Positions 54,766-57,233 of a stretch of DNA of 64,000 bases are shown here, piece after piece. Location of the stretch: IMG/VR virus record IMGVR_UViG_3300023174_000038, positions 124,001 to 188,000 of that record. One strand, given 5' to 3'. The notes below the pieces were generated by a model, which was not told the origin of the DNA, searched no databases, and was given only the letters and a program-made list of their open reading frames with translations. The position numbers and the translations under genes were made by a program. Each line of letters starts with the position of its first letter. The first letter of the stretch is position 1.

Positions 54766-55371
54766 ATGAAAAATAAATATGGCTTATTAGTGTATTGCTC
54801 GCATTGTGGAACTGAGTTTGTAACTAAACCTAGATTTTTAGAGTTTTGTTCAACTCCTTGTAAAAACCCGATCAATCGTGTAGGTAATATACCTTGGAAC
54901 AAGGGTATAAAAATGACACCTGATCAGGTGTCCAAATTAAACACAAAAGGTCTTAAAAAGGGTCACGGATGGAACAAGGGGAAAGATAATCCAAGACAAA
55001 AAGAAAAATGGACTGGCTCATCAAATCCAAATTGGGAAGGAAAATTAAACAATCAAAGGCCTAAAAAACAAATAAATGATGAATTAGTTAAATACAAGAG
55101 GGAATGTAGGAAAGCAACTCGCCGGTCTCTATACAGACTTAGAAAGCAAAATTTAATGCCAGTCACTGGCAAAAAGAAAACAGATATTCAAGTAGATCAT
55201 ATCATACCCTTTAGACAGGGATATGAACTTAAAATTGACCCTATAATTATAGGACATCTATGCAATTTAAGATTTATAACAGGTGAAGAAAACAGAAAGA
55301 AATGGGATACGTTTCAATCTGAGGAAATAATTAATAATATATTGGAGAACTATAATGGCATATTCAGATAA
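54766..55371 (+). CDS. HNH homing endonuclease with Zn-finger and NUMOD3-like N-terminus
   Basis: CSHC...FCS..C, PWNKG repeats, QVDHIIP...NLRFI...EN..K; overlaps the iscU start by 17 nt. Confidence 0.85.
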   Translation: MKNKYGLLVYCSHCGTEFVTKPRFLEFCSTPCKNPINRVGNIPWNKGIKMTPDQVSKLNTKGLKKGHGWNKGKDNPRQKEKWTGSSNPNWEGKLNNQRPKKQINDELVKYKRECRKATRRSLYRLRKQNLMPVTGKKKTDIQVDHIIPFRQGYELKIDPIIIGHLCNLRFITGEENRKKWDTFQSEEIINNILENYNGIFR

Positions 55372-55753
55372 AGTGGTTGACCACTACGAAAACCCACGAA
55401 ATGTGGGAACTTTTAATAAGGAGGACACGCACGTTGGGACTGGTATGGTAGGAGCCCCGGCGTGTGGTTAGTTAGGTGATGTAATGAAACTCCAAATAAA
55501 AGTAAATAAAGAAACAGGAATTATAACAGATGCCAAATTTAAAACATATGGGTGTGGGTCGGCAATTGCTTCTTCAAGTCTTGTCACAGACTGGGTCAAG
55601 GGTAAAACATTGGATGAAGCAACATCCATTAAAAACTCCCATATTGCCGACGAACTCAGCCTCCCCCCAGTCAAAATCCACTGCAGTATCCTCGCCGAAG
55701 ACGCCATCAAAGCCGCAGTAGAAGATTATAGAAAGAAGTATAATGGCCAATAA
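55355..55753 (+). CDS. iscU: Fe-S cluster scaffold IscU, interrupted by a 9-nt in-frame insertion containing TAG
   Basis: GGAGA RBS, ATG 55355: MAYSDKVVDHYENPRNVG...GMVGAPACG*LGDVMKLQIKV...GCGSAIASSS...LPPVKIHCS. The ORF track shows only the part from 55484. Confidence 0.92.
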
Positions 55754-56045
55754 ATTAGCAAAATTTTTAAACTCACAACGCCGTCATCGGGACGAACTAG
55801 CAGTTAAGAAACAAGTTAAGATAGCAAAAGCACACGGATTAACAAATAAAGATAAAGCAATAAAAGAACCACATAGATTAGCAAAACATCATGCTATGGA
55901 TTGTGGTATCCCAGGATGTCCTTTATGTAGTAACCCACGTAGGTCACATAAAGACAAACTTACAGCACAAGAGAAACGTTTGTTTCAGGACGTTGAGAAA
56001 ACGACAGATAAACACAGTAACGGATTACCACCTAGTAACGAATAA
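55743..56045 (+). CDS. Small basic hypothetical protein with CxxxxCxxC motif
   Basis: HAMDCGIPGCPLCSNPR. Confidence 0.6.
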   Translation: MANKLAKFLNSQRRHRDELAVKKQVKIAKAHGLTNKDKAIKEPHRLAKHHAMDCGIPGCPLCSNPRRSHKDKLTAQEKRLFQDVEKTTDKHSNGLPPSNE

Positions 56046-56061
56046 GTTACCCGTTTCAATG

Positions 56062-56069
56062 TATAAATA
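56062..56069 (+). promoter_or_regulatory. T4-type late promoter upstream of ahpC
   Basis: Intergenic TATAAATA followed by an 8-bp hairpin. Confidence 0.65.
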
Positions 56070-56118
56070 ATATTGAGTATGTTATACTCAAACAGACTAT
56101 TACACACAAGGAGAAAAT

Positions 56119-56694
56119 ATGAAAACAGTCGGAGATAAATTAACAGCATTTGCAATTACAGGTGTCAAACCAGGACAACCAGAAGATGCATACTTCACAA
56201 TTACAGAGAAATCATTTGAAGGTAAGTGGAAAGTAATCGTTTACTATCCAAAAGACTTTACATTTGTATGTCCTACAGAAATTGTAGCCTATGACAAGTT
56301 GACTACGGACTTTGCTGACCGTGATGCAGTATTGCTCACAGGATCAACAGACAATGAGTTCTGTAAGACTGCTTGGCAAAAAGCACATCCTGACTTAGCA
56401 AAGATTAGTCATACTCAGTTTGCTGACACACAACGCCGTAGCAGTGAGTATAATGAAGACACCGGACGCTATGAAAACTTCAGTCTGATTGAACAATTAG
56501 GTGTATTCTATGCCCCCGCTGGTGCGGCACTACGTGCAACATTTATTGTTGATCCACAAAATGTTATTCAACATATTACAGTTAACAACTTAGATGTTGG
56601 TCGTAACCCAGAAGAAACATTGCGTGTATTAGATGCATTACAAACTGGCGAACTATGTCCATGTAATCGTGCTATCGGTGGAGAAACACTATAA
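56119..56694 (+). CDS. ahpC: Peroxiredoxin (alkyl hydroperoxide reductase C)
   Basis: YPKDFTFVCPTE, RATFIVDP, VGRNPEETLR, LCPC. Confidence 0.93.
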   Translation: MKTVGDKLTAFAITGVKPGQPEDAYFTITEKSFEGKWKVIVYYPKDFTFVCPTEIVAYDKLTTDFADRDAVLLTGSTDNEFCKTAWQKAHPDLAKISHTQFADTQRRSSEYNEDTGRYENFSLIEQLGVFYAPAGAALRATFIVDPQNVIQHITVNNLDVGRNPEETLRVLDALQTGELCPCNRAIGGETL

Positions 56695-57233
56695 TGAATC
56701 CAATCACCTTAAATGGTGATTGGGTACAATCTGTAAAAGATAGTATTCCAGATCACTCTAAAGACATTAAACTAAACATTGATGCAGTTATTAATCGTTC
56801 AGGATTAGATCCAGTTGATACACATGCTATTGCTTATGTATCAGCATTAGCCGCAGGCAATGGTGGTTTAGCATTTGAGATTGAGCATAACAGTCCATTG
56901 TTTAGTAACGAAGCAGAGCGTGAAGCCGCAAAGACAGCCGCAAGTTTGATGGGTCAAAACAATATTTGGTATCCATTTACTGAGATGGCTAATGACGAAT
57001 CAATGAAGGGTTTACCAGCTAGTTTGCGTATGAATGCTTATGCAACTCACGGTGGTGTATCTAAGAAGAAATTTGAAATGTATTCATTAGCCGCAAGTAT
57101 TATTGGTAAATGTCATTTCTGTGTGAAAGCACATTATGATACATTAAAGAAAGAAGGCATGACTACACAAGAGTTGATGGCTATTGGCCGTATTGCTGCC
57201 GTAGTTAATGCTATAGGTAAAGTATCTATTTAA
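56694..57233 (+). CDS. ahpD: Alkyl hydroperoxide reductase D (carboxymuconolactone decarboxylase fold)
   Basis: KDIKLN, AASLMGQNNIWY, LRMN, FEMYSLAAS..GKCHFCVKAH; TAATG-coupled to ahpC. Confidence 0.9.
   Translation: MNPITLNGDWVQSVKDSIPDHSKDIKLNIDAVINRSGLDPVDTHAIAYVSALAAGNGGLAFEIEHNSPLFSNEAEREAAKTAASLMGQNNIWYPFTEMANDESMKGLPASLRMNAYATHGGVSKKKFEMYSLAASIIGKCHFCVKAHYDTLKKEGMTTQELMAIGRIAAVVNAIGKVSI

Follow-up and report, generated by a model that had tools for sequence, protein, structure and literature searches.

Organization of the iscU locus

The window analysed here is a stretch of 64,000 nucleotides of a freshwater giant phage (IMG/VR virus record IMGVR_UViG_3300023174_000038, positions 124,001 to 188,000). 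It contains a free-standing HNH-like ORF directly upstream of iscU, the gene for an iron-sulfur scaffold protein, and the reading frame of iscU is interrupted by nine additional nucleotides. The features are as follows:

54766 to 55371, + strand: free-standing HNH-like ORF of 201 aa, a putative homing endonuclease gene
55355 to 55468, + strand: iscU codons 1-38, ending in the proposed take-off Gly codon
55418 to 55424, + strand: internal Shine-Dalgarno-like motif AAGGAGG, 3 nt upstream of the hairpin
55428 to 55466, + strand: hairpin with an 11-bp stem (55428-55438 with 55456-55466) and a 4-bp inner helix (55440-55443 with 55449-55452); the 3' arm ends on the first base of the take-off codon
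55466 to 55468, + strand: proposed take-off codon GGT (Gly38)
55469 to 55477, + strand: the nine additional nucleotides, inferred not to be decoded, i.e. the stop codon TAG (55469-55471), the spacer TTA (55472-55474) and the proposed landing codon GGT (55475-55477)
55478 to 55753, + strand: iscU from codon 39 (Asp39) to the end, including the GCGSA (Cys63) and HCS (Cys106) motifs, followed by TAA (55751-55753)

The iscU start codon at 55355 overlaps the upstream ORF by 17 nt. The first 38 iscU codons end with ...GAPACG, and the Pfam profile NifU_N matched the first piece at profile positions 1-35 and the second piece at positions 35-124 (E-value 3.6e-38), both above the cut-off. The nine nucleotides are therefore extra, and they are located between the Cys37-Gly38 and the Asp39 codons of the cluster-binding loop, 114 nt from the iscU start. 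The insert is not an assembly artefact, because identical sequence was present in several IMG/VR contigs from other samples, and a contig from an independent DNA run matched positions 55115-55489 without any difference.

The assignment of the upstream ORF to the HNH endonucleases rests on sub-threshold evidence. The best E-value with Pfam HNH was 0.001 in 9 of 17 family members, below the gathering score, and NCBIfam gave no match. A profile search of solved structures with the family yielded only a chance hit to Alba. A Foldseek search with the whole protein was weak, and when the C-terminal domain was refolded alone, the top hits were again the Cas9 HNH domain and the colicin E7/E9 DNases, but still at E-values of about 1. 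However, the look-alikes in a protein atlas were viral HNH clusters, some JGI records name family members McrA, and the residues D144-H145, N167 and N176 are invariant. These residues are situated on a predicted beta-beta-alpha unit, with strands at 141-145 and 168-172 and a helix at 173-178, and pLDDT was about 90 or more over most of this domain. In addition, the protein contains an N-terminal 4-Cys zinc ribbon and PWNKG/GWNKG repeats.

Natural variants of the insert

Next, we aimed to clarify whether related genes contain similar inserts. We identified 43 distinct take-off/insert variants of 4-10 nt in over 200 related sequences (97 distinct genes in one collection), covering all three frames and always at this junction. 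Forty variants start with TAA, TAG or TGA directly after a GGN codon, and 42 end in a second GGN codon (naive binomial p about 1e-49, although the variants are not independent). Three alleles break the rule: tgttgga and aggc have no stop codon, and tgttgac has no landing Gly. The take-off and landing codons often differ at the third base, for example GGT versus GGA or GGC. A scan that allowed any 1-15 nt at the site found nothing else in IscU apart from three odd alleles, and an independent metagenome scan repeated this result. A scan that allowed TGG in addition to the three stop codons returned 118 loci and no TGG. Two loci (L125/L126) carry the 8-nt insert plus an intein at Cys63; an apparent insert of 1022 nt at these loci was a BLAST artefact. 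In a scan of the genomes of 185,579 species for cellular iscU genes with an insert, for which the denominator is unknown, the seven hits were not IscU.

All insert lengths from 4 to 10 nt occur, and sister lineages of the HNH-like gene differ in frame, for example tgactgga versus tgagga. Only codon-matched hopping would restore IscU in all of them. Both gene halves are under purifying selection in insert-bearing alleles, with pN of 0.14-0.15 and pS of 0.58-0.78 (0.15 and 0.78, respectively, for the downstream part). In the sample seeded with the HNH-like gene, which was not preselected for them, the Asp39 and Val40 codons between the landing codon and Met41 vary only synonymously. In the pattern-scan samples, part of this conservation is imposed by the search patterns.

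A hairpin and an AGGAG motif accompany the insert

Folding of the window alone did not yield a significant hairpin (z = -0.64), and Rfam returned nothing at gathering score. The support comes from the comparison of insert-bearing with insert-free alleles and from covariation. Of the 11 stem pairs, 10-11 are formed in all 97 viral and all scored metagenome insert-bearing alleles, in contrast to 4-9 in 86 insert-free alleles, irrespective of the presence of the HNH-like gene. On the alignment, 97.8% of the cells are paired, compared with 33-44% when partners were slid, and 0 of 500 shuffles reached the observed covariation score. Compensatory changes occur at three pairs, pair types switch repeatedly within single insert variants, and synonymous variation is reduced in the stem arms. 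AGGAG or AAGGAGG is present in 94 of 97 insert-bearing alleles, but only in 2 of 85 insert-free alleles, and it appears under different amino-acid contexts (KE, KG, EE). No revertant alleles with a hairpin but without an insert were found; the best insert-free alleles have 8-9 of 11 chance pairs and no AGGAG.

Association of the insert with the HNH-like gene

The initial annotation had proposed that the HNH gene and the 9-nt insert may form a mobile cassette analogous to T4 mobA/gene 60, in which the insert disrupts the target of the nuclease and translational hopping repairs iscU. To test this proposal, the co-occurrence of both elements was quantified. Among 183 distinct iscU alleles, 69 of 95 insert-bearing loci have the HNH-like gene or a fragment of it directly upstream, compared with 12 of 84 insert-free loci (Fisher p about 1e-15; the samples are pooled and related, so this is not a clean probability). 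All insert-bearing N parts may descend from one ancestor, and thus the counts overstate independence. In the sample drawn by iscU similarity alone, 0 of 78 loci without the HNH-like gene carry an insert.

None of the 77 loci with an intact HNH-like gene keeps an uninterrupted canonical site: 66 carry an insert and 11 carry amino-acid changes at the site, whereas 66 of 73 loci lacking both the gene and the insert are canonical. That this site is the target of the nuclease is an inference. The family is always found directly upstream of iscU, and 72 insert-free alleles lack the gene. The otherwise syntenic locus L002 represents an empty site, which lacks the roughly 640-nt HNH segment and has 17 nt in its place.

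The alleles are mosaics that break exactly at the insert. The identity between the window and L002 jumps from 58-72% to 93-100% exactly at position 55475, and the N part of iscU is only 71% identical to L002, while the C part is 97% identical. Among insert-bearing alleles, N parts are more conserved (0.935) than C parts (0.863), which is the reverse of the insert-free control, and the same insert is joined to different C-part backgrounds. The HNH-like gene plus the N part is more conserved than the flanks. The insert type tracks the tree of the HNH-like gene, with 33 changes compared with 52.8 when shuffled. Twenty-six insert-bearing loci lack the HNH-like gene, and 19 of these show no remnant of it. 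In some insert-bearing loci, remnants of the gene or a NUMOD3 gene in its place occur.

Together, these comparative results support the proposal of the initial annotation. The hairpin and AGGAG elements, and the persistence of the insert after loss of the HNH-like gene, go beyond it.

A proposed mobile cassette with a stop-hop

The most likely explanation, in which we have reasonable though not full confidence and which rests on comparative evidence without protein or cleavage data, is a mobile cassette with two linked parts. The first is a free-standing HNH-type homing endonuclease gene inserted directly upstream of phage iscU. The second is a recoded iscU 5' region that ends in a 4-10 nt insert exactly between the Gly38 and Asp39 codons. 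The insert would interrupt the DNA stretch that the nuclease most likely recognises or cuts in insert-free alleles, so that a genome carrying the nuclease is immune to it. The gene would be rescued during translation: when the Gly38 codon is in the ribosomal P site, the A site holds a stop codon, which is slow to decode, peptidyl-tRNA-Gly unpairs, the mRNA slides 4-10 nt, the tRNA re-pairs with the second GGN, and decoding resumes at Asp39. The inferred product is a full-length IscU with the normal sequence. The 5' arm of the hairpin would be outside the ribosome, while its 3' arm occupies the 10 nt just upstream of the take-off codon, and zipping of the hairpin probably pulls the mRNA forward. 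Unstimulated stop-hops in E. coli are reported as low-level, and thus the yield could be small.

Alternative explanations

The main alternative, although unlikely, is a split IscU, in which translation ends at the stop codon and a second polypeptide is started just downstream, by termination-reinitiation or from an internal ribosome-binding site. The 38-aa N fragment and the C fragment would then assemble without a covalent link, as in the T4 gp39/gp60 and Aeh1 NrdA proteins split by homing endonucleases (bioRxiv 10.1101/2022.08.31.505936). Re-initiation is possible for some alleles. In the window, the in-frame ATG of Met41 is located 6 nt after the landing codon and is preceded by AGGTGAT (GGNGAT), and AAGGAGG would be a few nt from that ATG when the hairpin is folded. 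The 8-nt variants with GGA TGA create an in-frame ATGA overlap encoding M-T-G-D-V-M. However, candidate start codons differ between variants, lie inside the stem, or are absent. The alleles L112 and L261/L262 have no in-frame start before residues +33 to +35, and a start there would lose Cys63. Several variants have Leu instead of Met41, and the landing GGN is kept even in these cases. The hairpin and AGGAG are the same in all variants although the putative restart sites are not, and a restart at Met41 would lose the conserved Asp39, which together with Val40 changes only synonymously in the unbiased sample.

It also seems improbable that the hop is real but the insert is not an immunity device, and is instead an attenuator or regulator of IscU expression that merely sits beside a selfish nuclease gene. 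The insert-bearing alleles without the HNH-like gene are compatible with this view, a low hop yield would limit IscU dosage, and the cut site is not known. In contrast, no locus with an intact HNH-like gene has an intact canonical site, those without an insert all carry amino-acid changes at exactly this spot, a recombination breakpoint coincides with the insert, and the insert occurs only at this one junction in viral, metagenome and genome scans.

Similarly doubtful are several different recoding events, i.e. stop-codon readthrough for the 6- and 9-nt inserts, +1 frameshifting for the 4-, 7- and 10-nt inserts, and -1 or +2 shifting for the 5- and 8-nt inserts, which would add 1-3 residues to the loop. 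A stop codon in the A site may stimulate +1 frameshifting, as in prfB, GGT AGG C resembles shift sites with a hungry codon, and many stop codons are followed by C, a weak termination context. However, three mechanisms would be needed in closely related alleles, GGN does not re-pair in the +1 or -1 frame at these sites, and the extra residues would sit between the ligand residues Cys37 and Asp39. In addition, it would remain unexplained why 42 of 43 inserts end in a Gly codon. Reassignment of a stop codon or a suppressor tRNA was rejected, because all three stop codons are used in the inserts, most inserts are out of frame, the window uses TAA, TGA and TAG (34, 7 and 4 times) as ordinary stops, and it has no tRNA gene.

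A decaying pseudogene, an assembly error or removal of the insert at the RNA level is very unlikely: although the frame is formally broken and gene callers split the gene, both halves are under purifying selection with synonymous sites near saturation, the insert recurs in independent samples and in an independent run, no known process splices out 4-10 nt, and the only contig spanning the site in RNA runs, which hold mostly iscU of relatives, still carries the 7-nt allele (DNA carry-over is not excluded).

Comparison with known systems

A 2016 review stated that no natural occurrences of in-frame stop hopping were known (PMC5009743), a 2022 preprint described the T4 gene 60 bypass cassette as unique (bioRxiv 10.1101/2022.08.31.505936), and in the literature searched no paper linked iscU with hopping or homing endonucleases. 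We regard it as somewhat more likely than not that the variants represent the first natural family of stop-hops, with a minimal bypass element of about 60 nt that evolved independently of T4 gene 60 as the immunity half of a homing-endonuclease cassette. That would mean that selfish nucleases repeatedly drive the invention of ribosomal recoding in conserved phage genes, and that the gene 60 arrangement is a general evolutionary solution for breaking a nuclease target inside untouchable codons without changing the protein. The 43 natural variants amount to a ready-made mutational series, and the element is small enough to be a portable recoding tool. Because genome annotators will call these genes broken or split, phage auxiliary Fe-S genes are being under-counted.

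The T4 mobA/gene 60 cassette consists of an HNH homing endonuclease gene and a 50-nt translational bypass (Bonocora et al. 2011, as cited in PMC5009743; Manning & Atkins, bioRxiv 10.1101/2022.08.31.505936). As in the iscU locus, the nuclease gene sits next to a conserved gene, a non-coding insert lies in conserved codons near the presumed target, take-off and landing codons are both Gly, a stop codon directly follows the take-off codon, and the endonuclease is lost or replaced in some lineages while the bypass is kept. However, the gap in iscU is 4-10 nt and leaves no room for a stem-loop inside it, the hairpin abuts the take-off codon instead of lying 9 nt upstream, and the SD-like motif is upstream of the hairpin rather than inside the gap. 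The host gene is iscU rather than topoisomerase, it is not split into two ORFs with added tails, and no special nascent peptide is evident. No similarity of the nuclease to the MobA remnant gp60.1 was detected (hhalign probability 0.1%), although this was only a partial test because T4 MobA is a pseudogene.

In synthetic stop-hops in E. coli (Weiss et al. 1987, as cited in PMC5009743 and bioRxiv 10.1101/2024.12.09.627546), matched codons also flank a stop codon, 9 nt specify one amino acid, and peptidyl-tRNA re-pairs a few nt downstream. Those were artificial, low-level events without stimulators, whereas the iscU alleles form a natural, conserved family with dedicated RNA elements. The 81 bypassed byp elements in mitochondria of Magnusiomyces capitatus (cited in PMC5009743) are likewise short non-coding inserts in conserved genes, and they are corrected during translation, as is inferred for iscU, but they are mobile GC-rich elements without a linked endonuclease.

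Free-standing phage homing endonucleases such as the T4 Seg and Mob proteins, with self-immunity through target-site polymorphism, share the intergenic nuclease gene, a sporadic distribution among relatives, and degeneration and loss over time, as well as, by inference in iscU, a target in the neighbouring conserved gene and co-conversion of flanking sequence. In iscU, however, the inferred immunity comes mostly from an insertion that would be lethal to the gene without recoding, and only a minority of loci use substitutions. Lastly, in the programmed +1 frameshift of prfB (RF2), a stop codon in the A site and an upstream SD-like motif, which are also present in iscU, act as stimulators. In that case the slip is 1 nt onto an overlapping codon and serves autoregulation, whereas in iscU the landing codon does not overlap the take-off codon, apart from the 4- and 5-nt alleles, and the proposed event works in any frame.

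The interrupted iscU gene

The window contains an ORF of 201 aa directly upstream of iscU, and the two genes overlap by 17 nt. The reading frame of iscU comprises 38 codons ending in ...GAPACG, which are followed by nine bases and then by GAT GTA ATG and the remainder of the gene. The arrangement is as follows:

54766-55371, + strand: ORF of 201 aa encoding the HNH-like protein
55355: start of iscU
55466-55468: GGT, the codon of Gly38
55469-55477: the nine additional bases, TAG TTA GGT
55751-55753: TAA, the end of iscU

A comparison with the Pfam NifU_N profile showed that the first piece of the gene aligns to profile positions 1-35 and the second piece to positions 35-124. The nine bases are therefore extra, and they lie in the cluster-binding loop. 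The same insert occurs in several contigs from other samples, and a contig from an independent DNA run covers 55115-55489 without a difference. The window, which matches a 348.7-kb IMG/VR contig from lake water, has a G+C content of 37.7%, contains no tRNA gene, gave no Rfam hit, and uses all three stop codons normally. Downstream of iscU (55743-57233) lie an unknown gene (phrog_4499), an AhpC/TSA peroxiredoxin gene (56119-56694), and a CMD/AhpD-like gene (56694-57233), which together form an Fe-S and oxidative-stress auxiliary gene cluster in a giant freshwater phage.

Co-occurrence of the insert and the HNH-like gene

Next, we aimed to clarify whether the insert and the HNH-like gene occur together in related loci. 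To this end, loci were retrieved in four ways: by similarity to the C part of iscU, by similarity to the HNH-like protein, by DNA patterns for an interrupted site, including one that allowed any 1-15 nt, and by the same open pattern applied to metagenomes and to one genome per species. The viral collection yielded 183 distinct iscU alleles, and the state of the upstream gene is given below.

State of the HNH-like gene upstream of insert-bearing and insert-free iscU alleles
iscU allele; total; full gene upstream; fragment; none; contig too short to tell
Insert-bearing; 97; 66; 3; 26; 2
Insert-free; 86; 11; 1; 72; 2

In the sample drawn by iscU similarity alone, none of the 78 loci without the HNH-like gene has an insert. 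Of the 26 insert-bearing loci that lack the gene, seven still hold a 3' remnant of it. In another locus, L236, an ORF of 194 aa with a NUMOD3 motif (L236:4209-4790, - strand; E 2.9e-8, above the cut-off) occupies the position of the HNH-like gene and overlaps the iscU start, while the insert taacgga, the hairpin and the AGGAG motif described below are kept. This looks like an endonuclease swap, as reported for MobA. The HNH-like family is always found directly upstream of iscU. In one contig, a gene call of 231 aa (P0109) carries a NifU_N hit and appears to be a homologue fused in frame to the N piece of iscU, which could be a real fusion or a gene-caller artefact. The locus L002 represents a syntenic empty site, in which about 640 nt of the window are replaced by 17 nt. 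No IscU gene in 185,579 species' genomes matched the interrupted pattern, although the denominator of this search could not be determined.

Anatomy of the insert

In total, 43 distinct variants of the take-off codon and insert were found. The inserts are 4-10 nt long, and all of them are located at the Gly38/Asp39 junction. Forty variants begin with TAA, TAG or TGA immediately after the Gly38 codon, and 42 end in a second Gly codon that is followed by the Asp39 codon. The sequence GGT TAG TTA GGT GAT of the window is one example, and others include GGA TGA C GGA, GGT TAA C GGA, GGC TGA CG GGC, GGT TGA GGA, GGC TGA ATTT GGT, and GGT TA-GGA. A scan that accepted TGG in addition to the stop codons found 118 loci, none of which contained TGG.

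Three alleles depart from the rule. The 4-nt insert GGT AGG C GAT (loci L263 and L264 and four metagenome loci) has a rare Arg codon in place of a stop codon but keeps the hairpin, and it resembles hungry-codon shift sites. The allele tgttgga has lost two A bases and carries a T to A change relative to the window (positions 55470, 55474 and 55477), and it has no stop after the take-off codon. It was found in two IMG/VR contigs (L088, L089) and also in a metatranscriptome contig (run X17), and thus it is a real allele, although its decoding is unexplained. The allele tgttgac has no landing Gly, and its contig ends nearby. In addition, an IscU-like gene from a metagenome (L284) has the sequence GAPECG and a single extra base at the same junction, which may be a sequencing error or a different kind of interruption.

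Apart from these cases, the anatomy is the signature of codon-matched hopping over a slowly decoded A-site codon, as described for synthetic constructs in which 9 nt specify one amino acid (PMC5009743; 10.1101/2024.12.09.627546).

Selection on iscU and the mode of its translation

Substitution patterns were analyzed to determine whether the interrupted gene is functional. Among 23 distinct insert-bearing genes from the sample seeded with the HNH-like protein, pN was 0.14-0.15 in both halves, whereas pS was 0.58 upstream and 0.78 downstream of the insert, which is near saturation. The gene is therefore not a pseudogene. In the same sample, which did not preselect for them, the codons of Asp39 and Val40 vary only at synonymous positions (GAT/GAC and GTA/GTC/GTG/GTT). 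This argues that translation is already in the IscU frame before Met41.

Re-initiation downstream of the stop codon was considered as an alternative, and restart codons were searched for systematically. The in-frame 9-nt alleles, including the window, have only Met41, and the 8-nt GGA TGA alleles have an in-frame ATGA overlap. In contrast, the alleles L112 (tgagga) and L261/L262 (tgaatttggt) have no in-frame start before residues +33 to +35, and several variants have Leu at position 41. Furthermore, sister lineages on the tree of the HNH-like protein differ in insert length and frame, yet keep the stop codon and the landing Gly. Hopping explains all variants with one mechanism, whereas re-initiation, frameshifting or readthrough each explain only some of them.

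Some genes that carry the hop insert contain a further element. An intein of about 340 aa, starting with Cys and ending ...SHN before Cys, with a weak PT-HINT hit, is inserted at the Cys63 codon of iscU (L125:3624-4643, also L126, L202, and L265 after TYGC). This small gene has therefore been invaded by two kinds of selfish element.

RNA elements associated with the insert

A consensus fold of 33 variants revealed a hairpin directly upstream of the take-off codon. In the window, the RNA elements are located as follows:

55418-55424: AGGAG/AAGGAGG motif
55428-55438 paired with 55456-55466: stem, the last pair of which uses the first base of the take-off GGT
55440-55443 paired with 55449-55452: inner helix

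Stem pairing and folding energy in the different classes of iscU alleles
Class of allele; stem pairs (of 11); mean folding energy (kcal/mol)
Insert-bearing, viral (97); 10-11; about -25
Insert-bearing, metagenome (all that could be scored); 10-11; not computed
Insert-free, with or without the HNH-like gene (86); 4-9; about -11

On the alignment, 97.8% of the cells pair, compared to 33-44% when the partners were slid by 1-3 columns. Twenty-eight cells carry changes on both sides, compared to 9 in shuffled alignments, and none of 500 shuffles reached the observed covariation score, although it should be noted that related sequences inflate such numbers. Pair types switch among AU, CG, UA and GC, repeatedly within single insert variants, and third-position variability is depressed in the stem arms only in insert-bearing genes. 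Folding of the window sequence alone did not give a significant result, and the evidence for the hairpin is comparative. The AGGAG or AAGGAGG motif lies 2-4 nt upstream of the stem. It occurs in 94 of 97 insert-bearing alleles, but in only 2 of 85 insert-free alleles, and it appears under different amino-acid contexts.

We infer that at take-off the 5' arm and the inner helix are outside the ribosome, while the 3' arm lies in the mRNA channel. Zipping of 11 pairs would pull the mRNA forward by up to about 11 nt, which matches the presumed hops of 4-10 nt. This parallels the idea that pairing of the exiting mRNA acts as a driver in gene 60 (10.1101/2024.12.09.627546).

State of the presumed target site and mosaic structure of the alleles

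None of the 77 loci with an intact HNH-like gene has an uninterrupted canonical site (MVGAPACG-DVMKLQIK, with the junction at the hyphen). Sixty-six of them carry the insert, and the other 11 carry amino-acid changes right there (LTGSPACG, GAPSCG, DLMKL, DVLQLS). By contrast, 66 of 73 alleles lacking both the HNH-like gene and the insert are canonical.

The alleles were also found to be mosaics. The identity between the window and L002 is 58-72% across iscU codons 1-38, and it jumps to 93-100% exactly after the insert, from 55475 onward. In the most discordant alleles, no insert-bearing N part exceeds about 0.81 identity to an insert-free allele (mean best 0.76), whereas C parts reach 0.87-0.98 in at least 11 alleles. 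The same tagttaggt insert is joined to C parts resembling those of three different loci, i.e., L002, L076, and L058. Among insert-bearing alleles the N part is more conserved than the C part (0.935 against 0.863), which is the reverse of the insert-free control. The HNH-like gene plus the N part form the best-conserved block between genomes whose flanks are diverged or not syntenic, and the insert type is clustered on the tree of the HNH-like protein, with 33 changes compared to 52.8 when shuffled. Together, these results fit a cassette made of the HNH-like gene, the recoded 5' part of iscU and the insert, with recombination ending at or next to the insert. The cut site itself is only inferred.

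The HNH-like protein

The family has 226 relatives, none of which has a precomputed Pfam domain, and some JGI records name members McrA or YacG-like. Its conserved features are an invariant 4-Cys zinc ribbon, PWNKG/GWNKG repeats, and the invariant residues D144-H145, N167 and N176. In the window, the zinc ribbon forms the N-terminus (54766-54870; C11, C14, C28, C32) and is weakly similar in fold to the gyrase inhibitor YacG (4tma, E 1.2). The AlphaFold2 model of the C-terminal domain has a pLDDT of 88 and shows a beta-beta-alpha unit. A Foldseek search placed the Cas9 HNH domain and the colicin E7/E9 DNases on top, but at E about 1, and Pfam HNH hits stayed below the gathering score. Look-alikes in a protein atlas are viral HNH clusters, and no similarity to T4 gp60.1 was found. 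We call the protein HNH-like; membership by curated thresholds is not established.

Comparison with known systems

The initial annotation had proposed that the nuclease gene and the 9-nt insert form a mobile cassette, in which the insert disrupts the nuclease target and translational hopping repairs the gene. This interpretation is supported by the co-occurrence test that it suggested and by the further evidence. The hop, the role of the hairpin, the nuclease activity and the cut site are inferred from comparative data, and we regard the cassette-plus-hop account as a whole as likely rather than established.

The gene 60 cassette was called unique in 2022 (10.1101/2022.08.31.505936), natural in-frame stop-hops were stated to be unknown in 2016 (PMC5009743), and our literature searches found nothing on iscU. 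The closest system is T4 mobA/gene 60. Both systems have a Gly take-off and a Gly landing codon, a stop codon directly after the take-off codon, a 5' stem-loop and an SD-like element, and an endonuclease that can be lost or swapped while the bypass stays (10.1101/2022.08.31.505936). However, the iscU element has a gap of 4-10 nt rather than 50 nt and no structure inside the gap, its hairpin abuts the take-off codon, its SD-like motif lies upstream of the hairpin, and the host gene is not split into two ORFs with added tails. In addition, both the target gene and, as far as the comparison with gp60.1 shows, the nuclease are unrelated to those in T4. The element would work like gene 60 bypassing, but it is not a homologous member.
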